A stretch of 64,000 nucleotides of DNA, taken from NCBI GenBank assembly GCA_964252035.1, contig OZ176202.1; one strand, 5' to 3'. The translations under genes and the position numbers were made by a program. This DNA comes from Podarcis erhardii (taxonomy: Eukaryota). The notes beneath the pieces are model-generated. The model was not told the origin of the DNA. It did no database searches and worked only from the letters and a program-made list of their open reading frames with translations. Below, piece after piece: positions 18,601 to 55,100 of the stretch; position 1 is the stretch's first letter; each line of letters begins with the position of its first letter.

Positions 18601-21600
18601 GTGCGTCTTATGGGGCGAGTGCAGGCTCCTTGGCTTCAGCGATAGCAACGCGAAGCCTCTGAAGCCTGCGCTCCGGAGGCTTCGCGTTGCTTCTGCTGAA
18701 GCCAGGAGAGTCTGCTCTTTGAGGCTGGTGGTGGGGGAAAGCAGCGCTTCCCCCATCGCCAGCCCCAGAGGATGGGGGGCAGTGGGAAGGCGCGCGAAGC
18801 CTTCCTGCTACTCTCCAACCCGGCTTGGAGGCTGGCGGTGGGGAAAGCAGCGCTTCCCCCATGGCCAGCCCCAGAGGATGGGGGGCAGTGGGAAGGCGCG
18901 CGAAGCCTTCCTGCTACTCTCCAACCCGGCTTGGAGGCTGGCGGTGGGGAAAGCAGGCTTTTCCCCAAGGAGGGAGAAGGGACGGACTGGCAGAGTCCGT
19001 CCCTTCTCCCTCCTGTGGGCTTTTGCGGGAGTTGGGGGAATTCCCCCACCTCCCGCAAAAGCAGGCAAAAGCCGGGCGCTCTTTAAAGCGGCTGTGTAGC
19101 TTCTGCTGGCTTTTCTAGGAGGTGGGGGAATTCCCCCACCTCGTAGAAAAGCCCGTAGGAGCCGCGCAGCCTTTAAAGAGTGTGCCGCTCTTGGGGGCTT
19201 TTCCCCAAGGAGGGAGAAGGAACTGACTGGCCGTTTCAGTCCCTTCTCCCTCCTGGTCGAAAAGCCCGCAGGAGTCGCGTGCGGCTCCTGTGGGTTTTTG
19301 CAGGAGGTGGGGGAATTACGCCACCTCCCGCAAAAGCAGGAAGAAGGTCTTGGAGTAGTGCACATGCTGTGTGCAGCCTGTCCGCTGCTCCCAGAGCTGC
19401 GGGGGGAGGGGGGAATCATATTTTTTTCCTTGATTTCCCCCCCTGAAAACTAGGTGCGTCCTATGGGCCGGTGCGTCCTATAGGGTGAAAAATACGGTTA
19501 CTTTTCTAATCAAAATAACAGAACGAAGGTGGATACCAATTGGTCCTCCACATGTTGCTGGAACTACGACACCCATCATGCCTGGCCATTGGCCATGATG
19601 GCTGAAGCATATGGGGAGAGTTGGGAGACCAAAAACATCTGAAGGGTCACAGGGTTTCCCCATCCCGGATATAGCACACGTGTGATGAACTCACCGATTT
19701 GAGAGTGATTTCAGCAGGATAAGCAGCTGATCTGAGTGTTCTTCTGCTTCAAAATCCACTGAATTGCTAATGATATCCAAACACTGCATGTTCCATCTGG
19801 GATCCATAGGAATCACATGCTCGTCTGTTTGGATAGATGAACAACAAGGAAAACTCACATTTGTTTTCATTACAGTGGTACCTCAGGTTACATATGCTTC
19901 AGGTTACAGACTCTGCTAGTGCTTCAGGTTAAGAACTTTGCTTCAGGATGAGAACAGAAATTCTGCTCTGGTGGCGCGGCAGCAACAGGAGGCCCCATTA
20001 GCTAAAGTGGTGCTTCAGGTTAAGAACAGTTTCAGGTTAAGAACAGACCTCTGGAATGAATTAAGTACTTAACCTGAGGTACCACTGTATAAACATTTTC
20101 CAACTCCCTCAATCCAAGAAACAAAGCGAGCAATATGCATCAGCATGAACAGGATGCAAGACACCTAACACATGTTCACTGCGTAAAGGAGATGAGATTG
20201 TTTAAATGGGAACAAACCTGCGGTAGGTTCCAATATGCAATTTATTGCACCTTATTTTATGCGGAGTAGCATTTTCTAAGCCCAATGAAAGGTGTGTTTT
20301 TTTAAAAAACAAAACACAGCCCACTCAGTTCTGTTGCAAGCTACGTTTCACTCCCCATAACCTCATCAATATCACAAATCAATCTTCACTGCATCAAAAA
20401 CGCAGGAAGAGAATACACACTCGCAGCCAAGAGAGAAATAAGACATCTTACCGGTCATATTTGGTTGCAGCAACTTTATTACATTACTGATCGCACCTGA
20501 GAGGGGACTGAAGTAAAAATTATTCAGGGATGCTGCACCGGCTTCCAGCTGAGTATAAACTGAATCTGTAGAAACAAGACGACCTGTGAATTCATGCCTT
20601 TCTAAGCTTATTATTTTTATTTCTAGGCTGGTAAGAATTCTTACTCATTCTTACTCGCCCTTCATCGTCAGGGCAGGTTGCAGCAGTATACTGCACAATG
20701 ATGAAAACAGACAGAGCCATTACAATTATAAAACGAGTGAAGCGAAACAGAACAGTGTAATTTCAATTAAACATGCTGGGTCCCACGAATCAAAACACAT
20801 GGACTGCCAAAGGATTCCGCTGCGATCCAATCCCAAAGCCCCTTCCACCCCATGCATAAGGACCAAGAACTCCTGTGCATATATGGGAGGGGGGGGCTAC
20901 TTCCTATTAGCTGCAGCTCCTTACACATCAGGTGACGCGCTGAAAGTCCAGCAACCTGAATGAGTGGGGTATTCATGGGGCAGCTGTGAGAAGAAAGCCA
21001 ACCCCTGCGGAGAATGCAGTCAATTAATCAAGATAAAGCTGAATTGGTATCAACATATGAAATCAGTTGTGAGCTAGGGAAACCCAGCCAGATGGGTATG
21101 GTTATTATTATCAGAGGCCAAGAAGAAGCTGCCAAGAAATTCCAGTTTTGGGGTTGAGAGTCTAATCAATTTTTAATTTTTTTTGGCCATGAGACACTAT
21201 TTCCTTTCACTCACTCACTGCACACACTATTCTGGTGACGCTGTGCTTTTGACTTCCTCCATCTCTCTACATTTACTTACAAAACTCAAGCTTAGGATCG
21301 TGCTGCATGATTCTCTTCCACCACCACAAAAATTCAGATTAGTCTTGCTTAAGCAGCAAGAGTCAGCACTTACCAGGCACTTGTGGCAAATTCTTTTTTA
21401 ACTGATTAAGCCACCCAACTCTCAACGTCCAGTCTTGATTCGTTGCTTTCTCTATGAATAACTTAACGGCTGCAGAAAGGACCTCCATGCCGTCTGCCCA
21501 AGAGGCACTAGCTTCCACTGCACCAAATTTGAGGCAATCTGGATTAGGAGAGTGCAGGATTTTCTCAAAGTCATGTATAGTGAGAGGCAGCATCCTGAAA

Positions 21601-24600: not shown

Positions 24601-27600
24601 TCTCAAAGCATAATCCAACAACACACTCCAATAAGCACAAAGAATGTCAGCGCACCTGAAATTTGGATGCGGTGTGATAGTGGGGGTTACACCATCGATC
24701 ACTCCTCTTTCACTCATGGTGAGGACTCCTCCAGGTTCAAGCAGAGCATTCAAGCGGTCCAGCACAGAAGGACTACACACAAGTAAAGGAACAATTAAGC
24801 ACTAAAGGTGGCTCACTGATTTAATAACAACTGCAAGCATTCATTTGGCTTCATAATGGAAGGAGTATTCCTCCCCCCTCCCCCCGCCCTGCTCAATCTG
24901 ATCAGTTTTATAGCATCAGATATACGGAAGTAATGCAGAAATGTCATGGGATGGTGTCTAGTTCTGTCCCCTCTGCTCAACAAAGACTCTTTGCCCCAGT
25001 GGATGCTTCTGTGACTGGAAGGGAGGGGAAAGCAATTTGTGCAATTTTTTGCAAACTTCCCCCTTTCTTCTGCATTGCCTCCTCCTTTTCCAAAGTGTTC
25101 CCTAACCCTCTGGAGCAGGAATTCTTTTTTTTGGGGGGGGGGGTCACAGCAGGCTACAGAGAGAAGGGAGAAATAAGCAAAAATTGCCTTATGACTTCCC
25201 CCTTCTGTTCACGGAAGTGTCTGCTGGAGCAAAGGACCTCCTTGAGTAGATGGGAGATAACTGTATAATCCAGTTTCCTTTGAAACAGTAAATGATGATC
25301 TACTCCTTGAATTTCTCTCTTTGATCTGGTACATGATTTGTAACAGAGATTCAATGACGTTTATCCAATGTGGTTTTCTATATTTATGATAATTTCTTTC
25401 TAACAACACGGTTGCGCTTACCTGCAGAAGTTAACATTGTCCATCAAGAGCCATTCTCCAGACTGTAAAGCCTGAACCAACATCCCATCAACCCATTCAA
25501 ATGTGCCGTGGTTGCTGCTGCTCATATACTGAATAACCTGCAGCTTGAAGTGCCGAAATTCTTCTACAAGTCTTGAAAACTCTAAAATCGGGGGGAGAGA
25601 TACTTAGAATACGATTCAATGAACCAATAAGCCAGTACTCAAGATTCACACAGAGTGCTTTTCACAACTACATTTAGTCTAGTATCCTTCGCCAACTTAG
25701 ACAAACGCTCCCTCTTTCTTTGTTCAGTTGTAATCATAAGATCTTTGCATTAGCTTCGACAAGATGTGATGTCTAAACTAATGCATGTAGATCAACCAGG
25801 TTTTCATTAAAAAGGGAGAATGTCTTTAATATTCACAGAATGATAAACATAATAAACTACTGCTAACTGGTGTGGGGGAGCGGAGCAACCATAACTGTGA
25901 TGGAGGCTGGAAAAATCTTTAAGGAAGCAAATAATTATGCTTTGTGCTTCTGCAGATTATGTAGCTTTAATAAATATGGACCTGGGTGGCTTGCTCACAA
26001 GTGCTCTATGTGCATTCATCACTGTACATGTAAAGTTCCTGCACACTTCGGCTGAATGCCAGTGGGTGCAGGAGAATAGAGAGGTGGTTGCACACATGTC
26101 TAGACCATGTGGCATCACAAATACTCATACTTTTACTCTGGCCACATTTGTACACATTTATCTCAGTTGACAACTACTCCATAAAGACACACCATCTCTC
26201 ACCATGAAAATGTCTTCCTTGTAACATCAGAGCAGTCTTTAAAATGCTTTGTGGTTTTTGCCTTCCCTGGTGGCATGCAGCAACTGGAATTTGCACATGC
26301 TGAGTTGATGACATTTTAAAAGGGAAAAACGCTATCACTTCCTACTGCTTCTGTGCATACCTGGCTTTGAGTAGGAGCTGATCTTGTTGTTCAGCCGCTG
26401 GACCAGTGCAAGGACGCCCTCCAATTTGTTCACCAGTTCAATGGTTATGTTTTGATTCCCTTCCCCAAGGGACTTTGGCTTGAAATTTAGAACGAAACTG
26501 CTCCAGGCACGCAGCACAATTTCAGCATCTTCTGGACAGATAGCAGTGAGGAGAAGGCTGTCCCTTAGAAGTGTGCTTACAACGTTCTCCACCTTCTCCA
26601 GCAAGCTCTTCCAAGGCCTAATGATGTCAACCTATAGGACATTTATTACATTGGTCACTGCTTGAACCACCACTTCCCACTGGGTTCCTTCAGCACGGTT
26701 TTGGAAACCACTTAGAGGTGTTTCTTTCTTGCTTTCATTTTTTTTTTTTAATAAATATTTATTAGAGTTTTTAAATACAAATGCACCAATAATAAACAAT
26801 CTTACTTCTATCACAACGTAGTTTCATCACTTCTTTGGACTCCCTCGCGTCTCCCGCTCCCATTTACATCGTTAAACGGTTTTTCCAAGCAAATTATCAA
26901 CTTGTTTATGATCTTATATCCACTCATTTAAGTATAATCTAGCAATTCTCCATAAAATTTATGTTTTCTTTAATCTCACTTATCATCAAATTCAAAATCT
27001 AATTTAGTGGTGGCCAATTTTTTATAATCTAGCATCCTTCTTAACATTCAACCAAATTACAATGTTTTTGTAAATACATCTTAAATTTCTTCCAGTCTTC
27101 CTCAATCCTCTCTTCTCCCAGGTCTCGGATTCTGCCAGTCATCTCGGCCAGTTGCATATAGTCCATCAGCTGCATCTGCCACTCTTCCAGTGTGGGTAGA
27201 TCTTGAGTTTTCCAGTTTTTTGCGATGAGTATCCTTGCTGCCGTTGTTGCATACATAAAAAATGTTCGGTCCTTCTTTAGCACCTTCTGGCCGACAATAC
27301 CCAAAAGGAAGGCCTCTGGTTTCTTAGTGAAGGTATACTTAAATACCTTTTTCAGCTCATTATATATCATTTCCCAGAAGGCCTTCACCTTAGGGCATGT
27401 CCACCAGAGGTGAAAGAATGTTCCTTCATTTTCTTTACATTTCCAACATTTATTATCAGACGAATGGTATATTTTGGCAAGTTTAACTGGGGTCATGTAC
27501 CATCTATATATCATTTTCATTACATTTTCCTTCAAAGCATTACATGCAGTGAAGTTCAGCCCAGTGGTCCATAACCTTTCCCAGTCCTCGAACATAATGT

Positions 27601-30600
27601 TATGCCCAATGTCCTGTGCCCACTTTATCATTGCCGATTTAACCATTTCGTCTTGTGTGTTTCATTTTAACAGCAAGTTATACATTCTAGATAGTATCTT
27701 AGTCTTTGGTTCTAACAATTCTGTTTCTAACTTCGATTTCTCCACCTGGAACCCTAACTTTTTGTCATTTTTAAAAACTTCTTTAATCTGAGCATAATGT
27801 AACCAGTCTCACACTTTGTCCTTCATTTTCTCCAAACTCTGCAATTTCCAATTGTCTCCATCTTTTTCTAATATTTCCCAATATTTTGGCCATTTGGCCT
27901 CCATATTGGGTCTTTTTCGGGCCTTAGCTTCCAGAGGTGAAAGCCACCTTGGAGTTTTATTTTCCAATAAGTCTTTGTATTTTGTCCAGACATTAAACAC
28001 TGCTTTCCTGACAATATGGTTCTTAAAGGCCTTATTGATCTTAACCTTGTCATACCATAAGTATGCATGCTGTTTCTTTCTTGCTTTCAGTTAAGACATT
28101 AAAACTTTGCCCATTCATATACTCCTCAAATTTAAGTTAAGTGGTATCTTGTATGCACTTGACTTGTCCTTATTCCCAAATTTAAAAAAATGCACACTTA
28201 CTTGCTCAAATCCACCTAACAGCTCGGTTGTATCCATAGAACTGTTCATCGCCATGATCTTCAACTGATGACCTGTCAGATATGCTAGAAGCTGAATGAG
28301 GCTGGTCTTGCCAGCAGCCGCAGGGCCTACCAATATCACCATCCAACTCATATGCACACATTTCATGATGGACTCCAAGGGCTGGAGTGAATGGTGAAGC
28401 AGGGATAAGTTTCTTACAGGAGGAGGAGCATAGTTTGCGCGGGAGAGGATTGAGAAACCAACCTTCAGTAGAATTAAAAACAAAAGAAGCAAGTGCATTA
28501 GTGTGCATGTATAGTGTGGAGCAGAAATTCAAGAAGATGCCCAAGTAGCAGCAACTTTTGTTCTCTCTCACCTGGACGTCATAAGGAGTGATGTGGAACT
28601 GTCTGGAACCCATATAGGGTTCAGCATCCTGACCAAAAATGTCCCTGAATAGACACACTACCTAAAACAAACAAACAAACAAACAAAAAACAGATGAAAG
28701 ATCACATTTATAACAAATGCTGAAATCCTTATATTCTAATTCTGCAGCAACTCTCAAATGAACGATTTCAAAAGAAACCGGGGAAACTCCAAATGGGTTG
28801 TTTGTTGAAGTCTGAAGTCACCTGCTTCAGGATACAGATCTGCCCACCTTGTAATGCTCAGCTGCAACCTGAACTAAGCCTCACCTTGAGAGAAGCTGGA
28901 ATGCAAAACTAGACTGCTTACATGCGGGGCCAGTGAGTTTTCAATTGCCCCTCAAAACCACATTTATTTTTCACGCCATTTTTCTGAGCACTAATCATAA
29001 GCAAAACGAGAACAGCATTCTGCAAATCCACTAAAGGCTGATTGTGGTATCTGAGAGTTGCTGGCACAGGACACAGCAAGAAAGCTGTGGGATCATTTTG
29101 TCTGATCAAGCTCCCTAATCGCAATGAAATTACACTTAGGTAGGTTCCCTTTCCACACACTTGCTGTAAGCCCTCTTACCCAATGTACCAGGAGTTTAAT
29201 CTATCTCTAACACATCCTTAGCACATGAATGGTGATAAAACTACATGAGGTCCCTTCAAATCCTGCACCTGCTTAACTGAAATGCTAATTCAAGGCCTTG
29301 GAGGAAAGTAGATAATCTTAAATAGAAGTCATTCAATGTTTCAAATAATGTGGGAAAAGGTACCCAAAAAAATTCAGTAAAATTTGTGTTTAAGATCCAA
29401 GAATGGTTTAACATATCCATACTTGTAAAACAGAAAAGACTAATAGGATTAAGCATATTTTTCATGTTCCTTACCTTCTCCTTGTCTGTATTTGTTCTCA
29501 TTCTTTCCCCGTATATCAAGAACATGTGTTGGCCTGGATCGTAACTGCCAGGCGACTGGTCAACAAGCATCAGCTGACACCATCGGAAAAGGTCACGCAG
29601 ATTAAACTCCCAAGGTCCACCTTTATGCCCCCACTTCTTCTCAATCATAACTTCTTGATCAATCTGAATAACGTACCAGTTCAAAAGATTAAAAACTCAG
29701 ACATGTTTCAGCTCATGGTAGATTATTAAAACGCCATTGCACAAGAAAGCATTCATCGTGCCAAGCATTCAACTTAATTTACTGCTCTTCTAAGCTACCA
29801 CCACTCTTTACTGTCCATTCAAAATCTTTATGGAATGCTCTTGTTCCAGAATAACTGGGGAAACCTAAACACATACAACATGCAGTTGTCTTACCTTGGA
29901 CACACATGTATGATTCTATGCCTACTTGCTAGGGGGAAAGCCTCAAAGAAACTTTTATGTGAACTCAGACTTAGTAAGCCTCAGCCACACAAACGGAACA
30001 TGCCATAGGAAGAAAAAAAGGGAAGTTCTGTCTGACATATTAGGCAACAAAAAATGAAATACAAACCCAGTCTGCAGTGGCTGTTATCTGTGGAGCCCAG
30101 CTAGTTTACATGCCACTGCAACTCCAGAGTTGAAAATGACTACAAATGAAGTTTGTCTCAATACATGTTCGGATGAAAACTGTGACCAGCTTTTTACATA
30201 GTTGCAGCAGTCATTGGTTTGGACTTGTGGGGACAGTCACCAGAACCCTGAAGTTCCTCTCCTTAAGAACACCATTCACATCATCAAGAGGAGTTTCAGG
30301 AATTATACTTACCATGTTGTTAAATTCAACCATTTTTGCAATAATCTTTTTGTCAATAGCAGGAAACAGGGTATTTCCAATGTACTCCATGTCTGCGGAT
30401 GAGAGAGGGTCCACGAAAACCTACATCATCAATATAATTAAATGGGGTGGGAGGTGAGACTCAAGTATTATTTTTATGTAGACACAGAAAAATGCACAGT
30501 GCGCTTGCAAATGAAATAAAAATGATTCCATTTAGAAAGGAACTGCAAGGAGGACAAGACAAATAGTTTTAAATGACATTATGGACTTGCCTGTGTGAAT

Positions 30601-33600
30601 CTGTTCAGAAAAGATTTGGGCAACCCCTTTCTGCCACCTCCTTGCCTGTAGGGATTCTGGCATCCAAAGATCTTTGTTTTCTTGTGTTGCACATGGAAGC
30701 TCATTCCCAACTCAGGAATGTAAATCTCTGCCCGATGGTCAAAACAAGCATTCAGGCCTTCTAGTACTGACTGAGAAGCCAAGTTCAGCTATTTGAGAGA
30801 AACCAACAGGAAAATTTACACTGCCCCTCTTCTTCACAACACACACTTTTGCCCACAAAACACCTTTAAATCTATAGCAAATAAGCAAAAGTACTGTAGT
30901 TAGCTCAGGAAAAGTTAACTTCAGATTAACACAAATGCCCTGGTTATTTAGCTACTCTTTTGGCTTCAAGCTCCTTTTGCACAACTCAAAAGAGCAACAG
31001 CATAGCCCAGGTACGTCCAACTCCCAAAGACTGTGATCTACTCACACTATAAAAAAACTGGCAATGATCTACCCATTGTTGTTGGATGGACCAGAGTTGT
31101 TGAGCTTTTTAGGAGGCCAAGGCTGTTGAGCTTCTTTGGGGGGAGGGGGAGGAGGAGATCACTGAGGGGCCTGAGATCTACCAGGATCTACCAGTAGATC
31201 ATGATCTACCTGTTGGACACGCCTGGCATAGCCTAAAGGTAAATACAACTGTGAAGTCAATGAGGCTGTCGGAATCCACCCAGATAAATGCCATTGCTCA
31301 GGGGTAGAGTAGATGCCTTGTGTGCAAAAAAAGGTCCCAAGAATCAATGGCTAGCATCTTCAAGTGGCACTGTTTGAAACCCTGAGCTGGATGGACCAAT
31401 ATTATAAAGCCACTTCCTATGGATTCTATGAAGAAAGTGTTGATTTCAAGCTAATTCAGCCCTAAGACGGCACTTAAAAGGTAAGTAGTGGTTTTAATCT
31501 TCTGTAAACTGCAGCACATCCATGACACAGAACTCAAGCTGTTTGTCCACAAAATCGCCTTCTGTAACTGCCACCCCAGAAAAAGCAAGTGTGTGTTCTC
31601 CCACTGGAAAACTGAAGATAAAATCTGAGCAGCCTCTTGAATAAATGGGAGCAGCAGACTGTTCCAGGATACTTTCTCCACGTAAGGACAATGCACTGTT
31701 AACTTTACCATGTTTGGATAAGATCCTTTTAAAGTCCCCAAACATCAAACTGAGACAGCTAGAGACCTCATTTTCCAAAAAAGGAACGAGAATCCTTTTT
31801 CTGTGCTACATTAAGCTGAACTCACCTCATCTAACACAATCCAGTGTCCAGCTTTCAATGCTGCAAGCAAAGGTCCATCACGCCAGGCAAATTCCCCTCC
31901 TTTGCCCCCTTCAACAGGTAAGTCTGTGCCAAACAAATCTGTGACGTCCTGGATCAGAAGGAAGAAAAGTCAAGGTTTCCAAATGCATGTGAAACAATTG
32001 CAATTTAGAAAAAGCTCTCCTAGGCTTGTAGTAATAATCCAGTAGTATTTATACCAAGAGTTATAAATATTTTGTTCTATGCATCTGTTGCATCAGCCAG
32101 TAAGTGCATTCTATGAACAAAAATGAAACCCAAGAGTAATTTTAAAAATAAAGAAAGATAATTCTAAACCATTAAGATTTTAACCAATATTCAAGCAGCA
32201 AACTTTGATCAAGGTTCTTTGCATCTGTATTTTAGGCAGTTTGTTTTGATCATTCACACCAATAGATGGATCACAATTCTAGCAGAATGTGTCCCTTTAC
32301 TAGACAGGAAAAGGAATATAATGCTTCCTCTTAGAATTAATCAACAATACACCCCTTATTAAACTTACCCATTTCTAAGCATCTTCCCCCTCCCCAATCA
32401 ATTAGGAGTATTCTCAAGATTTGTGAAAACTTAACACCTGTTAACTTGCAAGTATAGACTCTCACATTCACAAGTACAGGTATTTCAGTGGAGACCACAG
32501 TAATCCCTACCTACCGTTTGTTCAGAAAGATTGATTCTAACAAGGCAATTTCCAGAAGCCTTTGCCAAGGCTGCTACTAGGCTGGTTTTCCCAACACCTG
32601 GAGAGCCTTCCAGGAGAATGGGCTTGTTAAGTTGCAAGGCCCTTAACAACCGCTGTGCATTCATTGCTGTGGTTCCTGCATTTAGAGCGTAGTCTGAGAC
32701 ATTGTTCTTCTGGTAAACAGGGCCTGCAGCACAGAGAAAGCAAATAAAAAATTAATTAGATTACAGGGTAAGATGATCAACATTTTTTGCTCCAGTGAAA
32801 GTTTTAGCTCATCAGAGAGAATAATGGTACCAGATCAACATTCATCTTGATGCAGAGGGATTTTCCTCCAAAGTTTTGTTTTTTGTATTTTTGCAATCTC
32901 CCCTAATCTCCCCTCTTTTTAATGGGTGGTGCAGGCTTAGCTATATTAAGCAACGGCACTGCTGTCTTAACATCTGAAATACACAGAATTATGATACTTA
33001 ACAGATTGTGGAGTAAAATATTTGAATGCTCCACCATTAAAGCTCTTAAAAACTCCATGCATATGGAAAGCTAGCATGCCAGAGCGAAGTCTAAGCTAAG
33101 TGCCTTCATCTGAGAAAAGAGCATTCAAGCACTCAATTAGAAATGGAAGGGTCTTGCGTTTCAAAGCAAGGAACGGAGAATTAAGGCGGAATGAATACTG
33201 TTTTGAGGATTTAAAAGTTTCTCACAAATTTGATAGAACAAGATTTTTGTGCTGGAGAGAAAGGGAATTTGGAACTTTGTGTGTATCCCCCCCAAAAAAC
33301 CCGGGAGTGTCCTATTTGGGTCCCGGAGGAAGAAGTGAAAGGAGTTTGACAGCTGTCAAAGAAGCTGTCAAACGGGCGGACAAAGTAAAGAATTTTGCTA
33401 TTTAATAACTCTTGGAATTAAAGTTGATACATTTGGACTGAGGCGATTGGAAACAAAGTATTGATAATAACAAAGTAACAGATTATTGGAAAAGGACTAC
33501 TAAATAACTGAAAGCCCCCTAGGGGGAATTAGTGACATTACAATGGCTGCAGAGGGAAAATTACTGGCGGAGATAGAAAAAATGTTTTTTCTCGTGGGAA

Positions 33601-36600
33601 TCCTGCAGGAGCAGAGTATGGCTCTGAGTAAAGTTTTTATGACCTTGAATCCTGAAACAAACAACTCTGCTGAATGCACAAAGGAGATGTACGATAAAAA
33701 TTCTGCAGCTGAGCAGGAAGAGATGCCTTTGGAATTGACAGAGAAAAAAGAAGGAGTTCAGACACTACAAGTGGAAAATATCAACCAGAAATCTGCAGCG
33801 TCAGAGTATGAGCAAGAAGACCTTTGGATTACAGACCTGCGAAAGATGAGAAAGAAGAAGAGAGAAGCCCCTGGAGTACTCGGAATATTAAAACTAGAAA
33901 GAACAAAGCAATATGATTGGGACTTTTCTCTTGAGTATGGAAAACTAGATGGTCTTTCGCAGCAAACACTCTTCAACATTCTGAATGAAAGAAAATATGA
34001 TCTGACTCTGACTGAACTCCTTCGGGGTCTTAGGACCATCAAAGAGGACTACCAATATAGCTGGCAGAGAGGGACTGACAGAGAATCAGACGCCTCGGAC
34101 GTGAGGAATCCGGGCTAGAAATATTTTTTGTTTGTTTTCTGGACATTTGTCTAGGAAGGGACAGAAACCGGGGCAGGGGGGGGAGAGAATAGAATTATAA
34201 AATGTTATGTTTTGTTTTACTTGGACAATGTGACCTATAATTAATATAATAAAGGGAAAATTTGTGAAGGGGAAGTTAGATCGACCTTAAAAAAAAAAGA
34301 AATTAATGATTATAAGAGAATTGGATAGTTGAATACAGATAAACAAAAGATTTTAATTTTCAAAAGCAATGTGAATATCTTTAAGAGGTTAGGTAAGAAC
34401 TTGCTGAATTAACTTTGGAATTGGGATGTAAGAGGAGGGGGTGGGGGGAAGTCAATGAAAGTGGGTAAAGAAACTTAGGGTATGTAATTGTATTTGTGTG
34501 TTTGTTTGTCTTTGTCTTTGTGTGTGTGTCTGTTGTTATAAAATGTAAAAACCCAATAAAAATTATTTAAAAAAAAAAAAAAAATAGAAATGGAAGGGTC
34601 TTGGAAGGACTGTAACATGCATGTTTGTCATCTCTCACGCATTCTGCTCTTAAGTCATCGTAAGCGGCACATCACCATTCAAATTGTACAGCAGCGGCAG
34701 CAATACCACCAAAAGAGTTCCTTGCCTGTTGGTATGAAAAATGGGTGGATTCCTATGTGGTTCTCCATCCAAACCATTTCCCTTTCCCTCTTCAGGTCAT
34801 ATATTTTCAGCTCATTCTTCTGAACCTCAGTGAGTTGCACTACTTGGGAAATTTTCCCACACAAATATTCCAGGCATTTTTCACGAGCCAAAGCAGCTGA
34901 GCCAGCCGAACAGGACATGGTGCCTACATAGGGGGTAGAGGGAAGAAGAGATCATAGTTATATGTCAATGGTGGAAATGAACATATAGTTAACAGTAAGA
35001 TATGGCCAAAATCTGTAGACAGGTTGTAATGCACACTCTGTAGCACAAACACTATACGTCGCTTGCATGCGTCTTGAGACTGTTTACTATTTTTGTTCCA
35101 AAATGACAAACTTGCTTTAAACCCTTGCGTAGTTCTCATCCAGGGGTTGAGGGACCCCCTCCCCAATAAACGATCTGAACTATTCAGAGATAAAGCAAAG
35201 AAACTGAAGACATACCTGAACCTATTCCATCTATGTACACCAGACATGCAGCATGGACAAATGTTGTCACTGGACAGACGCTAAAAAGCTGGTGCTCCTC
35301 TGAAGAACTGGATAGTTTGTCTTGCACCATAGCATTCATGAAGCTGACCCACGACAAAACATCCCGGATGCTGAGGATACAGTGGTGTCCAAATTCTTGA
35401 TTGGTCAGCCACTCTATGAAATCCATCATGAGCCCTGCAATATCTGCCCCTGGGAAAGGTGATTAGATGGAGAGAAGAGAAAAAATACATAAGACACAGA
35501 CCTGAAACAGATTATGTTTTGCAGTAATTCACAATGACCCACAAGGGATGCAGAGGCCTCTGTACATAATTTTTGCAAGATAACTGAATAGAAGTGCTTA
35601 AATGTTTTTACATAAATATTTGCAAAAGTAGAAAGGGTTGAATGCTTAAAAAAAAAAAAAAAAAAACCCGTCCACAAGTAAATCAGCAGATGCAAAATTC
35701 AAAACATGCTTTGATCCTGCAACTTCATTGGTCTCTTTGTCCACAGTGACTGAACTTTGGCCCAGACCATTACTTTAAGCCTAAGAGGACAAACATTCAT
35801 CTTAATGCAGAGAATATAGCCAAGGATAGAAAAAATAAGAGAGTATGTTTCATCAGCACTACTTATTTTTTCATCCTTCATTTAAAACCTTGGATAATAA
35901 AGAACCTAGGTCAGACCTGTATAACATGCACATATATTTGGACTAGAACAATCCTTAGATGTTCAATTTGCAAGAGCTTTTTCCGACAGCAACTTACAGC
36001 TGTGTTCAAATGAGGTCTCTGGTGACAATATGCATAGCAACCTCTGCCTATACCACAGAATCTAGTCACTGAATTCCAAACTTTTTTTTATCCCTTTCAA
36101 CGTACTAAGAGCTCGAACTGTTCTTCCTTAAATCACTGTCCAGGCAATGATAAAATTTAAGCAAAAGGAAACTGATTTCGCACTTAAAATGACCCCAGTA
36201 TTATGCAAATATATTTCAATTCCACAATCTAGGTTTATCAAGTATAGAATTTGGAACATACAGCATCTGAAACATACTCAAAGGTAAGCTATATTCAATT
36301 TGTCATACTGCCAGATAAACATGCATTGGACTAAATCTCAAGTGAAAAATTGCAGTGTCACAAGATCACACATGTTTGCAATTTCTGTTATCTGCTAGTC
36401 GCGTCTGAACAACAGGTAAGTGGTACCTTCAGTCTGTGCCATTTGTAGGAGGAGTCCCATGGGACTTCTCCACAGGAATATTATTCAGCTTAGAGGAAAA
36501 CCTATGGGCAGCGTTTAAGAGAGTGAGACTATTTCAGAACCGCCTGAACTAACTTCTTAGCTTTTAGAATCTGAGAGAAGCTGACTTGCAAGAACAGAAG

Positions 36601-39600: not shown

Positions 39601-42600
39601 GTGTAAGTTGAAAAGAAATGAGTGGAGACTCACCGTCATTTGCTAAATGCTGAAGCCAGTCATACTCCTTCTCCATCTGTTCTGCTAATCGGTACCTTTC
39701 AGCCCAACGAAAGAGATCCCGAAGGGTAATGAAGCCATGCTTGCCAGCAAACACTGAGGAACCTCTGCGATAAGACTAGATTTAAAATGACATAAAAGCA
39801 TTCATGATCCAACACAATTTTCTGTACCCACAACTGCATTTTCCACTACTCTTGCAATGCCTCCCCTCCTTACCACCAACTCTCCAAGTTGTCTTCGTAG
39901 CATTTATTTGTCCAAATTTCACCAATATTTCAGTAATGACCATCAGTCCCCTGAGCCAAATTCTGGTAGGTTGCTATGTAGCTCAACAATAACCCCCCCC
40001 CAAAAAAAAACCCCAGAGCCAATAAATGTGTGCGCCTTGAGTATAAGACACGAAACTACAACTAGGGCTCAAGTGACTTCTCTATTCTTTTCTCATTAAG
40101 AGAAAAAAGATTACTGTCCATACCTGCAACTCCAGCATGACTTTGACAAGTTTACTGCAGTACGAAGGTGGAAGGTGGCATCTTTTGTGCAGGATGGTTT
40201 CTAGCTCTGTACTTGGTAGCTCATCAAAATGCAGCTCCACAAATCTGTTCCTGAAAGCTCTGGACAATACCTTAAGACACACACACAAAAACCACCTGTC
40301 AAGTGTTAATCTACTGAGAAATTCACACACACTGAAAACTTAACACGTTTCCCACCCTCAAACAGTCAGCTAGTATTTCATGGCCACTGAACATGTTCAT
40401 ACTCAAAGGGTTTGTCCTCTTAATCCCCCCCTTGAAGATTTCTGTGCACATCTGCAAACAGTGGGGTTCTTCCAACTCTGTTGACACCTCTCTCTTGTGT
40501 TTGGCTGGTACCATTTTGGATTGGCAACTTGGAGACTGATTTCACTATTGGTTCTGGATATGCTTCAAAGACTAGAGCGTTTGACTAGGAGTGGTGAAGA
40601 CTCAGGTTCAACTCACCACTTAGTTATAAAGCTCACTTGGTGATTCTAGGCCAGTCTTTCACTCAAACTACTACTCAACCTAACCTACTGCACAGGACTA
40701 AGGTGAAAGAGAGAAATCACATATGCCACCATAAGGTCCTTGAAGAAATGGTGGAGTGTACGTGTGAATAGCATATCAAAAGAAAGCCAGCTTCATCTGA
40801 GGAAACTATGTATGTACCTTCCTGCCTCCATAGAGCCCTGGAGGATTCTGTGTAGCAAAGAGCATGAATCTTGGGTGAGCTTTGACTGTTTCTTGGGTTT
40901 CTGTTATGAACAGCTCTCTGTTGTCATCCAATAATCTGTTCAGGGCCTCCAAAACATCAGTGGGTGCCAGGTTGAGTTCATCCAGGATTATCCAGTAGCC
41001 CTTTCGCATAGCATCAATGAGGACACCTATGAAGCATTTACGGGAAAAAAGAAATAAATGAGTTGCCCAGCCAGGCAAGCATCTGTTTGAGCAAGTGGGA
41101 GAACCAGCTGGCAAAGAAACACTGAGTGATTGAGGTAATAATCAAAGTCCTACCTTCCTTAAATATCAGCTTCCCAGATGGATCTGAAGTATAACAACCA
41201 ATGTACTCTTGGATGTCAGTATGTTCATGATTGTTAATCCTAACACAATGGTTCCCAGTTGCAGCAGCCACCCAGCGTATTAAACTGGTTTTACCAATGG
41301 ATGTGTCTCCTTGAATCAACACTGGGTAGGTCCTTAAAGAATTAGAAAACAGCCAAGTTAGATGTTTTGTTCTATGGTGGTGAATTATTACTATTACTAT
41401 TATTATCATTGTAAGAAGCTACAGTGGTACCTCCGTTTAAGAACAGCCCTGCTTACGAACTATTTGGTTTACGAACTCCACAAAACTGGAAGTAGTGTCC
41501 CGGTTTGTGAACTTTACCTCAGTCTAAGAATGGAAGCTGGATGGTGGAAGGGCACTGGCGGCGGGAGGCCTCAGTAGAGAAAGCATGCCTTGGTTTAAGA
41601 ACGGTTTCAGTTTAAGAATGGAGTTTGGGAACAGATTAAGTTTGTAAACTGAGGTACCACTGTACCTGATTGGCTTCAAGGTCTTCTTACAACATATATT
41701 GATTAAGAGCACTTCCAGAAATGAGACTTGGGCTTCCTGTTATGTTGTGTGATAAAAAAAGAAAAGTTCGCTGAAGTTCAGAATAAACAAGTCAAAGCTA
41801 GGGACAACTGACAACAGTATTTGTGCTTCTTAATTGTCATGTTATACACCTCCTCCAGCAAATGTCTGAAACTTGAACTACATATTTATTGTAGTCGTTC
41901 GCTCCCATGGAGCAAAGAGACACTTTTGTGTATTGTACATACATGTTAAGAGTCTTAAACACTTCAAAATTCTGTTTTCTTAAAAACAAAACAAACAACT
42001 GCTTACATTCCTCACATTGCTAATATATACATAGAAATGTAGGCTGTCATCTTGTTTGCTGCCTGTTAGCAAGAATTCAAAAACAAGGTGGAAAGTAAGC
42101 AGCCCCAACTCAGTGAATTTCAAGTCATGATTTTTAGGCCCATATACGTCAAAATTTGGCCACGTAAAGAATTCACATCATGGGATCTCCAAAAGCGGAA
42201 TTCCATAATTTCAAAAAGACTGAAGAACACGTATGGCATAATTTATTCCAGAATCATAACAATGCTCCAGAAATTATTCCAATTACAAACAATCAAGAAC
42301 AGAAAGTTTTAAGTCGTCACCCCCACTGTTATTACTGATGTAGAAAATATTTTTGTGCTTTTCTACAACAGTTAGAGACATTTGTCAATTGCTTATATAT
42401 TTGCAATGCTGTTTTCAGTTAATATTTGGCTTTTTGCAGTACCTATAAAATAAGAACATTCTTAAATTAAAAAATGCACTGTACCATAATTCAAGGAAGT
42501 ATGCTCTCATGAACAAATAGCAAGTGATTATTTTATTCTCACCAATCGAAATTAAACTATTTCCAAAGGAAAGAAAAAGGTACAGCCGAGGTCCAACATA

Positions 42601-46700: not shown

Positions 46701-49107
46701 AGTGGGGAAATGAAAGTGCAATTGTGGAATTTAGTGCTTAATGAACACTTGACAAGCTACCATCAGCTCTTGCTTGCCTAGCTAATTTGGACTGCATGGG
46801 CTATGAAAGATCAAAGTGAGCATAAAATCCACTCATATACCCAACCAGCCTTTTATCCAGCTGTTTTTGTAGCTAACATGTAATGCTGACAATCAGAAGA
46901 TGGCCAACAGAGCAATGTAGATCATTCTCCTTTTATCTTTCCCATGAGACCACTATATAATTCTAGTATCCAACTCTGAACCTGATGACATAAAGGACAC
47001 TTGAAGACAACTGCAGCTCTCAAAGAGAGTGTGCAACGTCTATTATTCCTGAGATTGGCAGCAAAAGGTATTTTGCAACATAGCAGCTCACCAGCATGCT
47101 TCAGCTATAGCAGGGATGAGGATGGGGAGTTAAGAGTCTTAATACAAACTGGCTGGCCACAGGTCCCTCATATCCCTAAGCTACTGCATGCCAATCAGAG
47201 ATGTATGCAACACAGACCAAAAGAAGTACAGCATTCTAGGCTACTGCAAACACCTCAAGAGCTACAAGTTGTTCTCAGCTTTAAAATGGTTTTGTAAAAA
47301 TGTACGTTCTGTATCTACCTGTTCCGTATTCCTGGAGGGAGGTTTCTTTTGCCAACATCAGTAGCTGGGTTCATGCAGGCAAACAAACGAAAATTTGAAT
47401 GACGTACCAGGGGCTCTACAAGGAAGAAAATGCACAACCAACAAATTACAGCGCTGTTTGGCCCCATAAAAACAAATGAAGCATACAAACAAGAAAGCAT
47501 GAAACAGCCATTTAAGGAAAATTAAACACAGAAGTTCAAGAAGCAAACAGAAAAACTCATACACAGCCAATTGGTTGTCCTAGCTGGTGAAAACCTACTC
47601 TCAAACTTCAGAGAAAGCTATCCTTAAAAGCAAAGATGAAAACTGCATCTTCTATCTTAGCAAACAAAAGGGTCTTTTTTCATAGTCCTCTGGAACTTGC
47701 TGTTCTTCAAGCTAAGGGACAGCATGGGCAAGGAATTGCAATTTTCTTCTTCAGGAGAAAACTCCCACATGCTAATCTCTTAAGTTATCGGGAATCAAAA
47801 GAGTGAAAAGATAGTATTACAGTGGTACCTCAGGTTAAGTACTTAATTCATTCCAGAGGTCCGTACTTAACCTGAAGCTGCTCTTAACCTGAAGCACCAC
47901 TTAAGCTAATGGGGCCTCCTGCCGCTGCCGTGCCGCCGGAGCACGATTTCTGTTCTCATCCTGAAGCAAAGTTCTTAACCTGAGGTACTATTTCTGGGTT
48001 AGTGGAGTCTGTAACCTGAAGCGTATGTAACCCGAGGTACCACTGTATTCAGATGTGAGTTTTTCAGCTATCAGTTTACAGGGCTTCCTAAAGTGGTCAA
48101 CGTTGACCCACGGGGTTTATGTGACTGTGCAGAGGGTGACATAGGTGTGAAAAAGTTTACAAGATATAGTGCAGAGAAATTATTTAGGCTCTATGAGCAT
48201 CAGAAATAAAGGGCTTGGATATTTAGACTTCAGCACCTCCTTTATGAATAATATAAGCTTTTTTTGTCAATTCCTCATAATGGTGATTATATTGTGGATT
48301 ATATACTCAAATTTCTTGAGTTTATTTCATTTACATTACTAATAATTTGATTCTGGGTCTGTCACATCTTTATATGCTCAGCTATGGGTCAATGAACTTA
48401 GATGACTTGAAACCATTAATTTCAAACTCTCATTTTTTTTTAAAAAAAGGAACTGAAAAAATACACCACTGCAGAACAGGAAAACTTGCTGCAACAAAAA
48501 ACAAAAACAATACCTGTGTCTCCTCTATCCAGCAGTATCAGTGAACCAGATAATCCTTCAAGTAAACCACTCAGACACTCTAAAGTTTCTGCTGCTGCCA
48601 AATTGATCTCATCTAGCAGAATCCATTCTCCTTTTTTCACTGCTTGTGCCAAGGTGCCCTTAAAAAAAGACAAAAAGACTCAAAATTAGCATTTGATAGG
48701 CATCTGGAGCTGCCCTCTAGTTGGACTATGTTTTGAAAACTGCATTTATAGTTAGAGGGACCAGATAATTCCAGAGTGGTATAAGCAGAATTCCATCTTT
48801 TACATTGTTTTTAAGCAAGTTGGTGGAGTGGAAACTCCTCATTTAATTAACCGCTTCTGCCCTATAACAGTTAAATATCTGCAAACCCCTCCAAGGTGTT
48901 TCTAGTTGTACCTACTTTTTTGACCTAGCACCAAACCCTTTGCAGCATTAACCTTTTTCCTCAATGAGGACTCATTCTTCCTATCTTGCAGATGAAATCT
49001 ATTTCACCTTCATTTTCAGCCAAGACTAAGGGGAGTAAACACAAGGACATTAAGTGAAACCTGGCTAGCCTGAAATCAAATGACCGCCTCCACAGGCAAA
49101 AAACCAG

Positions 49108-49146
<39 letters not shown>

Positions 49147-52100
49147 TCCACATCACACATTTGAATGCACACTGCTTCTTCCAAAGAATCCTGGGAACTG
49201 CAATTTACCCCTCACAGATCTATAATTCCCAGCACCTTTAACAAACTGCAGCTGGAACTTTATTTTAATAAAGTAACTTTAATATGCATCTTATGGACAA
49301 ATATGCTCTTATGCACAAAAGGACTACCTCTACAAATGCAAAAACTAGCGCATTTTCTGTCATCTTCATCTGTTGTTTTGCATGATCTAAGCGGATACCA
49401 AGTTCTTCCCACTTTTCCTTCAATGGTGAGCCTAACAACAACAAAAAAGGCAAGCTATAGTAAACGTAGGATAAGATGAAAACATTCAAGTTCATGAAAC
49501 CACGTAATAGAATTTGTCATAGTGCAAAATAACTCTGAATATAACATAAGCCGCTCTGAAGAGAATAGTCCAGTTATTCCAACAATTACCTTTAGACCAG
49601 TGATTTTATGCAATTTAAATCCTACTAGTAGAACAGGGACATTAAAATGAATGAACTGAATGAGTTGGAATTCATTGGACTGAGTAATATTTGAGGTCAA
49701 GTAATGCTCCGGTCATTTGTAATGCATATGCAATCACCTCCTCTGTTTAAACAAAGGAATGCTTACAAATCTGTTATTTTTATTGAACACATCTGGATTC
49801 AGCCTTAGAAGGCTAGTTACTTAAACTGTATCTCTTTCCACTTCAGAGCAGTATTTTATTTTTATCTTTATTTATTTATTAAATTTCTGTACTGCCTGTC
49901 AACTGAGGACCACAGGATAGTTTACAATATGAAAACACAAAAATACGAAACATAGTAACAAACAAAACAATAACCTTCCCCCCTTTCACCTTCCCCTTTA
50001 AAATGCAGTCAAGCTTATATTATTATTATTATTAGGCTGGGATAAAGTTTGTACAACTTTAACAAGACCTTCACCTCTTCAGTCAAAGATGATGTGTGAG
50101 AATGTTAAATTATTTCTGTCCTTTTATCTGACTGTTCATTAAATAGTTCAGGAAAGCTTAACTGTGACTCCCAAGCATCTCCCACCCAAGTCACTGATCA
50201 GATCCACACCCACTAAGCTTCAGGAATGATATTGGATCATGTATCAGAAAATGCTATTTTATACTGCAGAAAAATTGCTTTTTCCCCTCCACTGTTGATC
50301 TCTCCATATTTGAATTCTAGGGAAAAATCACACCTAGTACAGTGGTACCTCTGGTTATGAACTTAATTCGTTCCAGAGATCCGTTCTTAACCTGAAACCG
50401 TTCTTAACCTGAGGTACCACTTTAGCTAATGGGGCTCCCGCCGCCACGCGATTTCTGTTCTCATCCTGAGGTAAAGTTCTCAACCCGAAGTACTACTTGC
50501 GGGTTAGCGGAGTCTGTAACCCAAAGTGTTTGTAACCCGAGGTACACTGTATCTCCCTTGCCAAATGCACACTGAAGCACAGTCCACCCAACTTTAAGAA
50601 TGCAAGTTCCTCTTGTTTTATTTATTTGATTTCTACCCTGCCCGTCCTCAAACAGAGACCCATTTTAAGAACTTGGAAGTCTTACCATTTTCTTTAGCTT
50701 CCTTATTAATGGCAGATTTGTGTACATGCTGCATCAGCTTGAGAAGATCATGCCAGCGCTTCTGTCTGTAACATGTCTGGATGTGCCCCAAGAAAGTCTG
50801 GTTTTGTTTCCTGGAAAACGTCTGTGCAAAAAGCTCCTCAAAAGACTCTCGCAAGGGCAACCAAATCAGTTTGTTATCCACCGGCTTATAGCTGTAAATT
50901 GGACAAACAGTAATGTGTTAACTAAAAACTCCGGCAGCGACATGTGGCAAGATCAGGCTCAGTACAATCGGACAAGGTGAAAATCAAACTAGCCTCAGCG
51001 GATCTGATAACAGATAAAAGGTGAATCTGGTGGCCCCTGCACACCATTACTAAACAGATGACTTGAACATGTTGAAAATTAGAGACCGGCTGAAACATAT
51101 AAGAGAACTTACCCTTTTTTTCCAGGTATACAAAATGTCAAAAATTTCATCCCACAGCTACATGGCACTGCTCATTCCAACATCTCTCCCTGCCCCAAGA
51201 CCGAACATTCCCTTTTCCTTGTTCTACTTCCTTGTACTTGTCATTACCCCATCCATGGAATCCCACACCCCATTTCATGTTGCTCTATGTACTTTTCTTT
51301 TTGCCATATGGTTCTCTATTTTTGAATGCAGTAACTCTTATGAATGGGGTCCATGCACACTTCTACTAAATACAAGATCTGAAGTCACGAGTGGAAAAAA
51401 ATGATTTGTTGATGCAGTTGCCAACAGCAATTTGCAGAATTATTAGACACTCACCCCCCTAGGAGATCTGCAGTATCACTCTGCTGATTCATGTTGATAA
51501 CCCTCAAACGGTGCCCTTGAAGAAATAAAACACAGAAAAGACACTGAAGCATTTCTCAAACCTTTTCTAGAATCCTGGTCAAAGTCCCCGCATTATACTA
51601 CATTTTACCTGTAATGTGGGCCAGGTATTGAACAGTAGATGTTTTGCCTGTCCCCGTTTCACCCACCAACAACACAGGCTCTCCTTTGTCGACACACACA
51701 GCCAGCTGCTCAATTAATACGGATGATGGACGTGTGGGAGCAAAGGTCTGCTTTTTTCTGCCAATACATGAAAGGGTAAAATCTTCTGTTAGCAATACTC
51801 TAATGCTATGTGCTAAGCATCTCCAAGTGCATTTGATTCACTAATTCTACAAATATAATCTCTCTCTATTACCAGGTTTCAAAAAAACACCTCAATGAGA
51901 CATTAAAAATGCTGGCACGGAATTTTAAAGTTACAAGCACATTTTAAAAGTGCACTATTGTACATCAACCTGTAAGCCATCTGGTTGAAGGGTGGCTTAG
52001 TAATTTTAAAATATAAACAAACAAACAAACAAACGCATCAATACCTTTGCACAAGAAGCGCATGAATTTGCTTCCGTAAGAGCTGGACTCTTCCCACAGA

Positions 52101-55100
52101 GACCTCTTGCTCCCTTATTGCAATTTCTGGTTTGTAAAGTTGACAGTAGTATTCAGTCTAGAGTAAATAAATAAAGAGCATACATACTGAACTCAGCTTA
52201 CTAAAAAGAAACACATGATGTAGTCCTTTGCCATATGCAGTTGTGCAATACAGTGGTACCTCGGGTTAAGTACTTAATTCGTTCCGGAGGTGTGTTCTTA
52301 ACCTGAAACTGTTCTTATCCTGAAGCACCACTTTAGCTAATGGGGCCTCCTGCTGCTGCCGCGCCGCCTGAGTACGATTTCTGTTCTCATCCTGAAGCAA
52401 AGTTCTTAACCCGAGGTACTATTTCTGGGTTAGCGGAGTCTGTAACCTGAAGTGTATGTAACCCGAAGTACCACTGTACAACTGAAAGTTAAGACACAAG
52501 TCCAGTTTGCACATCACAGTAAGGCATAGTAAATAGTTTATTGTGAATGTGCCTTTCTGGGTTGTATGTCCCCCCCCCCCCATGATAGCAGGGAGCAGAC
52601 AGACCACAGTCCCTGCTTAGCATTATGTCCAAACCAGAGGCCATGATTTGCTTTGCTTCAAACCATGATCAGCAAATCAAGAACAACCTTAGCTACAGTA
52701 ATTTGCCGGGAACAAAACAAACTATGATCCCTCATTTGAATGTAACACTTGCTTCCTCCAAGTGTGAGTGGACAGGATTCGAATGACCAAGATCACCATG
52801 GTTACAGTGAACTATTAACTATGGTGATGTGAGAACAAGGCCTTTGGGCTGTATTCAGTTGTTACATGAACAGAAGTCAGCTCATGCAACCAAACTTTCT
52901 CTTTCACTCCTCCTACTCCTGCTGCTGCTCCCCCCTGCAGCCACTTTTCCCCTCCAAAGGGTTGGGTGCCTCAAATCAGGCAATGGAATCTTGCACCAGT
53001 GGCGATGTGCATGTGTGCATGATCCCTAAACCCAATTTCAGCCATGTTACATGTGGCTCTCTTCTTTCAGAAGAAAAACAAGAGTGGACACTATCCAGTT
53101 AGATCATTTAATTATTTCTTGGCAGTGAAGGAGACATGAAACTATTTTTTGCCTCCTTGACAAAAGGGGTATTTATTACACAATGCAGTATGTGTGCGAA
53201 CTCTTCCTTATGTCTACCTTATGCTTGGAAATGTTCAGTTGGCTTCCAATGATTTCTGCCATCTTCAGTCTACTTCCTTGCTTGGACAGCATAGCTGTGA
53301 AACAATCCAACGCCTGTCAAAGTAGAGTGGCAGGAGGGAGAGAGGGAGAGAGGGAGAGACAGAGACAGAGAGAGACAGAGAGAGAGAGAATTCAAGCTAA
53401 TTTAATATTTAATCAGAGGTTCTACTTTTCTTCCATACTTGAGTTCACTGTAGTCAAAATATACAACTGAGCTTCATGCAATGTATCGCTAGTTATGTCT
53501 CCATGAGGAAAACAAGAGGACGAGCCAATTCAGACATTTCAGCTCTCTTCATAATGGAATTCCTGGTGTAACAGCTGTGGGACCTGGCATGTCCCCAACG
53601 ACAGCTGCCTCTTCCTAGTGTGATTTATGCAACCATTCCTGTGAATCCCCCATTGTGAAGCAGCAGGTCTAGTTAGATCGACCCTCAAGGAAAATTTCCA
53701 ACACCAGAACCAGACCCTTGTTCATATTCCAAATGCAACCTGGTTTTTACATTTTAAGGAATAGGTCAACATCACTCTAAAAAACAAGGAACAGTTTGAC
53801 ACGTACCTCATGAAAAATATTCAGTGCAGTAGAGGAAGAAGAACTATCAAAGTTGTAAGCGATCCTGTTGCACCAATTCAGCAAGTCCCTAACACAAGAA
53901 AATAAGTGATGTGAAGCAGCTCAACAGTAGTCCTTCATTTAATTTTCCTCAGCTGCACACTGCTAAAAGTGCTAGTCTCGCTTCATTAATTGCATGGCTA
54001 TTTTTTTTAAGCGCCAACTCACCACATTTTCATTCAATTAATGCCTTCTCACTAGGAATTTCAATTAAGACCAGAGCAAATGGCCTCCAACACACTAGAG
54101 AGCAGTAGTCCAAAGATAATTTGCCTCCCCCAAACTCAAATATCCATCAGCTTAATTGCATATTAAAATACCTCAGAGATAACTCTCTGCCTTCTAAGCT
54201 CAGGCTTTTTTTGTTTTCGGTTAAGTGTGATGCGTCTTCCATTATGTTCTCATCGTCTGCGATATGGCTTTGTAATAGATGTTTATCACCAGTAAGCTCA
54301 ACATAAATCTCTAACAAGCGATCAATTACGACAGCAAGTTTAGGATACCTCCTCTGAAGAACCTGAAAAACAAAATAACATTAGCTAAAGTAAATATTTC
54401 ACAGTATTCCAAGGATTATATAACTCACTGAGTTTTGTCTAGACAGACAATGGTCTTAAAATCCAGAGATTTGATACATTTACAGTCTGCACAATTGCCT
54501 GGACTGGTCCCATGGGGTAGTGCCTACCATCAAATTTTACTTTGAAATTCTCTTAAAGGAAAATTTCTTTGCATGACAATTACACTGTAAAATACAGTAA
54601 TGCTCTTAAATTATCTTAGGCTTTATTTGCTAGATAGAAATGTCAGTCAGTAAGATGAACCCGGTGGACTGGGCAAATGGCCCATCTAGTCCAGGTTTTT
54701 CGTTCTCACTGTGGCCAACAAGATGCATATGGGAAACCTGCAGGCTATACTACGCTGAGGAAATGGCAATAACAATTTAAGATGATTTCATATGAAGTTA
54801 TAGCTGGACAGTCGGGTTAAGTCAATCCAGCAACGTCAATCTGTTTCTCTTGCAGAAGCACAAAGCAACAAGCATTCCATTATGGAATGGATACAAACTT
54901 CTTTCATGTCAAGGATTGTGTTTGGACATCATGCTAAACTATGGTTTGGTGAGATGTAAATGAGACTAACTCCCTCACAGTTTTTTGGCTCGGACAACAC
55001 AAGAAACTATGGTTAACCAAACACAGATGCTTCTAAACATCTCCTCACAGCCATGTGGGGAAAAGGCAATGGACACAGTTTCAACCTCTTCTACAAAAAT

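Follow-up and report, generated by a model that had tools for sequence, protein, structure and literature searches.

A high-copy poly(A) retroelement family in a lizard genome that carries a small protein of its own and probably depends on L1

Among the closest described systems to the element discussed here is mammalian HAL1, the half-L1. HAL1 elements are non-autonomous, have no second open reading frame (ORF2) but a single protein-coding ORF, are spread by L1, and occur in many copies with target-site duplications (TSDs) and poly(A) tails (PMC5753468). The element that we describe occupies positions 33157-34584 of a 64,000-nucleotide stretch of lizard DNA (Podarcis erhardii, contig OZ176202.1; "the window" below refers to this whole stretch). 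It resembles HAL1 in that it also has no ORF2, contains one ORF, shows a TSD and a poly(A) tail and is multi-copy. The hosts differ, mammals in one case and a lacertid-type lizard genome in the other, and so do the proteins: HAL1 encodes a recognisable L1 ORF1p, whereas the 191-amino-acid acidic protein of the lizard element has no detectable similarity to ORF1p. By its way of life the element appears to be HAL1-like, but membership in HAL1 is not demonstrated, as homology to ORF1 was tested and not found. A full-text literature search, with Repbase and Dfam outside the comparison, found no paper on a half-L1 in reptiles.

Other known systems share some of these properties. The type II ORF1p of L1 has a coiled coil, an RNA recognition motif (RRM) and a C-terminal domain (CTD). 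Like ORF1p, the lizard protein is encoded by the first (here the only) ORF of an L1-type RNA and has an N-terminal helix and a basic patch; it differs in that no RRM or CTD match is found, in its net acidic charge and in being mostly predicted as disordered. In Drosophila, HeT-A is a retrotransposon without long terminal repeats that has no reverse transcriptase (RT), uses RT in trans, encodes its own Gag-like protein with zinc knuckles and is targeted to telomeres. The lizard element also has no RT, keeps its own protein and would likewise obtain RT in trans, but its insertion is dispersed (in a midasin intron) and its protein is an orphan, in contrast to the Gag-like zinc-knuckle protein of HeT-A. 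Any RNA that uses L1 in trans has to deal with the strong preference of L1 ORF2p for the RNA that encodes it. Evasion of this cis preference is known mainly for Alu, which docks to the ribosome via SRP9/14, and to our knowledge it is poorly understood for transcripts of RNA polymerase II (Pol II). SVA, LAVA and processed retrocopies are polyadenylated RNAs of Pol II type that are mobilised by L1 in trans (PMC3287187, PMC2666806). Their insertions have the same hallmarks as the lizard element, but none of them encodes its own selectively maintained protein.

We read the insert as a recent copy of an L1-dependent, non-autonomous poly(A) retrotransposon family that carries its own, non-ORF1p protein, and we give this reading a probability of about 0.75. 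The insert is 1428 bp long and lies between two perfect copies of the 19-bp TSD TAGAAATGGAAGGGTCTTG, a word that matches the window exactly twice, even when up to 2 mismatches are allowed (two matches were seen in 0 of 100 shuffles). Between the TSD copies there is a leader, one ORF, a 3' region with AATAAA, and a pure A16 tail (Table 1). All these parts had been named in an original prediction made from the sequence alone and were found in place; its estimates of about 390 nt for the leader and about 470 nt for the 3' region come to 386 and 466 nt when measured. No ORF for an endonuclease or RT is present, as the 1428 bp contain a single ORF and Pfam gives no domain above noise. An Rfam scan of the element gave no family apart from one chance-level match to a long non-coding RNA, and ARAGORN found no tRNA-like part. 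A short interspersed element (SINE) was considered as an identity and rejected on these two results, on the length of 1.4 kb and on the maintained ORF.

Table 1. Coordinates of the element, its parts and other repeats in the window (SINE, short interspersed element; TSD, target-site duplication; UTR, untranslated region; AF2, AlphaFold2)
Feature	Position	Strand	Basis or remark
5' TSD copy, 19 bp, TAGAAATGGAAGGGTCTTG	33138..33156	+	single copy at the empty site in species B and D
5' leader, 386 nt	33157..33542	+	sequence
Intact ORF, 191 aa, stop included	33543..34118	+	translation, alignment, AF2
Variable part of the 3' UTR	34119..34394	+	without counterpart in some subfamilies (Logan contigs)
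3' terminal module, L1-3'-end-like	34395..34568	+	end-anchored alignment to the L1 copy
Polyadenylation signal AATAAA	34555-34560	+	sequence
Pure A16 tail	34569..34584	+	sequence
3' TSD copy, 19 bp	34585..34603	+	sequence
5'-truncated L1, ~1.33 kb	26738-28069 (or to 28088)	minus	ORF2p match, 19-bp TSD, A12 tail
SINE-like repeat copies, ~230 nt	19871-20106, 41453-41665, 47801-48047, 50335-50545, 52246-52478	both orientations	

The insert belongs to a very abundant, high-copy family of non-autonomous poly(A) elements in the lizard genome. This is clear from Logan contigs of four public runs (called organism A and species B, C and D here), which were compared with positions 32600-34690. Organism A gives the best match of the four and may be the very sample from which the assembly was made. 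In organism A each flank of the insert is represented by one contig with a word depth of 106-110, and these contigs end at the borders of the element, at 33156 and 34585. The number of contig pieces that match the element itself with at least 85% identity is 3475; of these, 1194 are at least 99% identical, 1354 fall at 95-99%, 751 at 90-95% and 176 below 90%. The summed word depth on the element is 1.6e5-7.1e5, or 1,500-6,700 times that of the flank (mean ratio about 3,800); summed contig depth is not the same as copy number, and these values are taken solely as "thousands of copy-equivalents". The original prediction had proposed a multi-copy family, and the check for a single copy turned up many high-identity copies instead. 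A single-copy processed pseudogene is ruled out by the thousands-fold depth and by the flank contigs breaking at the ends of the element. Depth also climbs from 5' to 3', from about 2.6e5 in the leader to about 3.7e5 in the ORF and about 5.6e5 in the 3' untranslated region (UTR), a gradient of the kind that 5' truncation during target-primed reverse transcription should produce. The mRNA-like layout of leader, ATG in Kozak context, single ORF, 3' UTR, AATAAA and tail would also be given by a processed retrocopy of a fast-evolving cellular gene that has no family of its own. This explanation is hardly credible in view of the thousands of copy-equivalents, the depth gradient, the many structural variants and the L1-like 3' end described below, and the product is annotated nowhere in the searched sources except for a broken "hypothetical protein" of Podarcis lilfordi.

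The element is also repeated in part in species B, C and D, where the depth is lower than in organism A. The parts common to these three are mainly 33300-33440, 33510-33650, 34000-34140 and 34420-34560, and the family is therefore older than the copy at 33157-34584. As far as the contigs can tell, it is built of conserved modules with variable stretches between them. Variants with internal deletions also exist; one joint in organism A (33371->34063) deletes nearly the whole ORF. Within the leader, the initial ~180 nt are subfamily-specific and a conserved block starts near 33340. Other subfamilies diverge upstream of this block, as seen from loose contig ends before 33339 and 33342, and the bin 33300-33369 is among the deepest, with 12,589 in species B and 18,723 in species D compared to about 40 in the flanks. 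The block contains a 10-nt direct repeat, AGCTGTCAAA, at 33351-33360 and 33363-33372, and the leader has a CpG observed/expected ratio of 0.60, compared to 0.14 in the left flank. We infer that the conserved block may be an internal promoter or regulatory block. Towards the 3' end, a joint in species B (34117->34394) reveals subfamilies in which the 3' module directly follows the stop codon, and loose contig ends are found before 34394/34395 in species B and C. Within the variable part of the 3' UTR there is also an internal AATAAA (34248-34253), with an A10 run 36 nt further on (34289-34298); this pair could mark an older or alternative 3' end.

The link to L1 comes from the last part of the element. 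On the minus strand of the window there is a 5'-truncated L1 copy (Table 1) that still holds an intact 201-amino-acid C-terminal segment of ORF2 (27041-27646), which matches residues 1069-1224 of human ORF2p with an E value of 1e-13. This copy has an A12 tail (26738-26749) and its own TSD, TGAAAGCAAGAAAGAAACA, which at 19 bp is equal in length to that of the element. The bottom-strand nick sites deduced for the two insertions are similar, TTTCTA/AT for the element and CTTTCA/GT for the L1 copy. Upstream of the tails, the last 174 nt of the element are collinear with the corresponding 174 nt of the L1 copy (26752-26925, minus strand), and 73% of the 142 aligned pairs are identical. This end-anchored alignment has a score of 20, compared to 5.6 +/- 2.3 for dinucleotide shuffles (20 or more in 0 of 1000), a maximum of 14 for 1869 real segments of the window and 7 for reversed controls. 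In the element the order within this module is a G-rich tract (34423-34448), AGTCAATGAAAGTG, a T/G-rich stretch and AAAAACCCAATAAA. Common to both 3' ends are the G-rich tract about 120-145 nt from the tail, AGTC.AA.GAA.GTG, the T/G-rich stretch and AAAAAC.C.AATAAA. The module boundary at 34394/5 coincides with the point where other subfamilies diverge in species B and C. We read the shared module as an L1-type 3' end, judging by sequence similarity; an RNA fold of it showed nothing unusual (z 0.11). With this 3' end, the TSD and the tail, L1 is the likely source of the enzymes. The comparison covers the 3' ends only, the sole L1 copy compared in the window being 5'-truncated. A tblastn search with the ORF as query found no match elsewhere in the window, and the ORF is thus not a frame-shifted piece of the ORF2 C-terminus found there.

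The uninterrupted ORF at 33543-34118, its strong Kozak start and the motifs RKMRKKKR and YDWDFSLEY had all been pointed out in the original prediction, and all are present in the sequence and its translation. The ATG has A at -3 and G at +4. The length of 191 compares with a maximum of 187 and a mean of 66 for the longest ORF of the dinucleotide-shuffled element (n=1000). The protein begins with a predicted helix (residues 2-35), followed by a middle part that is acidic and variable, by the basic patch RKMRKKKR and by a C-terminal block that is conserved and ends in ASDVRNPG-stop. A word search found seven relatives of 188-214 amino acids with 40-51% identity. When 1.84 billion cluster representatives were searched with a profile, length unrestricted, 11 proteins were obtained, namely two that were already known, eight new members (129-215 amino acids) and one spurious match, P0017, a fibronectin type III (FN3) repeat protein of 1336 amino acids whose score is inflated by its repeats. 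Altogether there are about 16 relatives, 129-215 amino acids long and 26-52% identical. All but one come from Logan contigs of 0.9-1.9 kb. The exception is P0013 (CAI5779343.1) from Podarcis lilfordi (Lacertidae), which is annotated as "Hypothetical predicted protein" and is truncated and frame-shifted at its end.

An alignment of 15 members (A3) shows where this protein is conserved. The start follows the pattern MAA[ED]GK..AE[IL].R.F.L[VL]G.LQ[ED] and the end RGTERDL[KR]ASD[VL]R.PG-stop, and ASD[VL]..PG-stop closes every full-length relative. Mean pairwise identity is 61% for residues 1-24, 66% for residues 171-191 and about 30% in the middle, where there are several indels, none of which disrupts the frame. 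Where the conserved blocks do vary, the exchanges are between similar residues (E/D, K/R, I/L/V). The resemblance of the last residues to a 2A "stop-go" peptide was considered and rejected. A 2A peptide is defined by D[VI]ExNPG followed by P, with translation continuing downstream, whereas here a stop comes after ASDVRNPG, four relatives have D or S in place of N, and the spacing is not that of DxExNPG.

The integrity of the ORF, as claimed for the window copy, extends to the relatives: at 26-52% identity they share the start and the last residue and keep the frame open between them, which points to selection on the translated product. This argues that selection has kept the reading frame and both ends of the protein in distant relatives, and the lineages that spread appear to need the protein. 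One could instead regard the ORF as incidental, in a family that spreads as RNA only, like SVA or a long SINE, with open frames that reflect young copies and database bias. The ORF-less deletion variants, such as the joint described above, fit such a family, and in organism A there is no clear excess of synonymous variants (7 compared to 11). Even so we think it very improbable, as relatives down to 26% identity retain the start, a similar length and the last residues across indels, whereas neutral decay to this level would have closed the frame. The conservative changes in the conserved blocks speak against it as well, and P0013 stands out as the lone broken member.

What the protein resembles was addressed by domain, structure and profile searches. 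Pfam gave noise only for the ORF and for all 15 members, and the L1 ORF1 Pfam families were matched by 0 of 15 even at E<=10. Sequence and profile searches of the PDB gave nothing relevant and did not find L1 ORF1p, ORF1p is absent from the matches of the large profile search, and the ESM Atlas had no usable match to the ORF. The suspected lack of an L1 ORF1 signature is thus seen in the Pfam, 1.84-billion-protein and PDB profile searches alike. AlphaFold2 models made with 8 and 15 sequences reach a mean confidence (pLDDT) of 46 and 45, and a model with pLDDT 45 is too poor to reach remote homology. Only the helix at residues 2-35 is confident (pLDDT 75-84), in agreement with the helix that had been predicted from the sequence; the rest is below 50 and modelled as helix or disorder, with no strand. 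The helix has hydrophobic residues in a 3-4 pattern (L7, I11, M14, V18, L21, S25, L28, F32, L35). The isoelectric point (pI) of the protein is 4.9, and 13 of the 15 members lie at 4.5-6.4. It is in view of these results that a true half-L1 has to be weighed, that is, a divergent lizard L1 that has lost ORF2 and whose ORF1, or its N-terminal part, survives as the 191-amino-acid ORF, changed beyond recognition. The L1-like 3' module would fit this, the long N-terminal helix is reminiscent of the ORF1p coiled coil, and HAL1 has arisen repeatedly in mammals (PMC5753468). We nevertheless find it unlikely, given that none of the 15 members matches the L1 ORF1 Pfam family, that the length-unrestricted profile search gave proteins of 129-215 amino acids and the FN3 artefact but nothing of ORF1 size, that the PDB profile search did not find L1 ORF1p, and that the protein is acidic and too short to hold a coiled coil, an RRM and a CTD.

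The insertion at this site is young, as expected from the original prediction. In species B and D, whose flanks have diverged from the window by about 2-2.7%, the site is precisely empty: one contig joins 33156 directly to the right flank (33156->34618), with a single TSD copy followed by GAAGGACTGTAACA, which corresponds to window positions 34604-34617. Just past this empty site, at 34617/34618 of the right flank, species B and D have 12-13 additional bases (AATTATTTTTT(T)C), an indel that has nothing to do with the insertion. For organism A, no contig bridging the empty site was found among the Logan contigs. The left-flank contig has 11 unaligned letters past 33156, and the right-flank contig ends at 34585. 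In a graph of 31-mers, an empty allele that shares the 19-bp TSD with a filled allele leaves 31-19-1 = 11 private words, and by the same logic the path from the right flank must branch at the first base of the TSD. The contig ends in organism A therefore fit one filled and one empty haplotype, and the site would be heterozygous for the insertion. If this reading is right, the insertion is still polymorphic.

The gene that hosts the insertion lies on the minus strand and is midasin, with Pfam matches to AAA_lid_7 ("Midasin AAA lid", E 7e-13) and AAA_5, and yeast midasin structures also match its sequence (E 2.5e-9). The element is thus antisense within a midasin intron, and its antisense position in an intron had been inferred in the original prediction.

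If the insert is indeed a copy of an L1-dependent family with its own protein, its life cycle might run as follows. Pol II would probably transcribe the element from the conserved leader block with the duplicated AGCTGTCAAA, giving a capped mRNA that is polyadenylated via the signal at 34555-34560. The 191-amino-acid protein would be translated from this mRNA. The RNA would then be copied at new sites by target-primed reverse transcription, the hallmarks of which are seen at the insert, with the endonuclease and RT presumably provided in trans by L1; this step leaves the A tail and the 19-bp TSD. The last ~175 nt, which are similar to an L1 3' end, may let the element pass as L1 RNA. In retrotransposition assays in cells, transcripts driven by Pol II needed ORF1p in addition to ORF2p (PMC2666806). 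On this basis the most likely role of the protein would be in cis, on the RNA of the element itself, as an accessory factor synthesised on the mRNA that encodes it. This RNA would be marked or packaged by way of the N-terminal helix and the invariant C-terminal tail, leading to capture of L1 ORF2p, and the protein would meet the ORF1p requirement of Pol II transcripts either as a substitute or as an adaptor. Given its acidic nature, it would be likelier to dock to the ribosome, to host factors or to L1 proteins than to coat the RNA directly.

A bolder possibility, which we consider somewhat doubtful, is that the protein is a new retrotransposition factor, unrelated to ORF1p, that was invented or captured by a parasite of L1 and diverts the L1 enzyme from its preference for its own RNA. 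In that case the C-terminal ASD[VL]..PG-stop and the helix might act on the element mRNA during or just after translation, and could hold the terminating ribosome or the nascent protein on the RNA, or dock to L1 ORF1p or ORF2p.

Several observations weigh against an L1-dependent family with a selected protein of its own. The nick site TTTCTA/AT is only loosely like the mammalian L1 consensus TTTT/AA. When the whole 3' UTR is compared to that of L1 there is no significant similarity (z 1.3), and only the terminal module of ~174 nt is alike. No autonomous partner lineage was identified, the L1 copy in the window being similar at its terminal ~174 nt only. ORF1p is a nucleic-acid chaperone and basic, and the acidic pI and the lack of a predicted RNA-binding fold make the lizard protein a poor fit to an RNA chaperone of this kind. 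Protein collections hold only called ORFs, which means that ascertainment favours intact copies. Finally, the 18 best-supported variant sites of the ORF in organism A include 7 synonymous and 11 non-synonymous ones; individual copies look near-neutral, as expected of copies that are dead on arrival.

The window contains some other repeats. An A19 run at 35648-35666, in the same intron region as the element, has no obvious TSD and may be the tail of an older retro-insert. An interspersed repeat of ~230 nt (TACAGTGGTACCTCAGGTTA...) is SINE-like and present in five copies that are 73-94% alike (Table 1). At 18734-19363 a 106-nt tandem duplication, 99% identical, is clustered with nested inverted repeats and palindromes of 60-80 nt with GGGGGAATTCCCCC cores, and this cluster is overlapped by long chance ORFs on both strands.

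A family such as this one, which is seemingly still active, offers a naturally occurring test of what an mRNA-like transcript requires to exploit L1, since it has been very successful with a small non-ORF1-like protein of its own, the two ends of which are sharply conserved. The thousands of copies also amount to coding sequence in a lizard genome that is unannotated, which matters for gene annotation: P0013, deposited for Podarcis lilfordi as a "hypothetical predicted protein", shows that copies of the family leak into gene sets. If they are polymorphic, individual copies may in addition serve as insertion markers.

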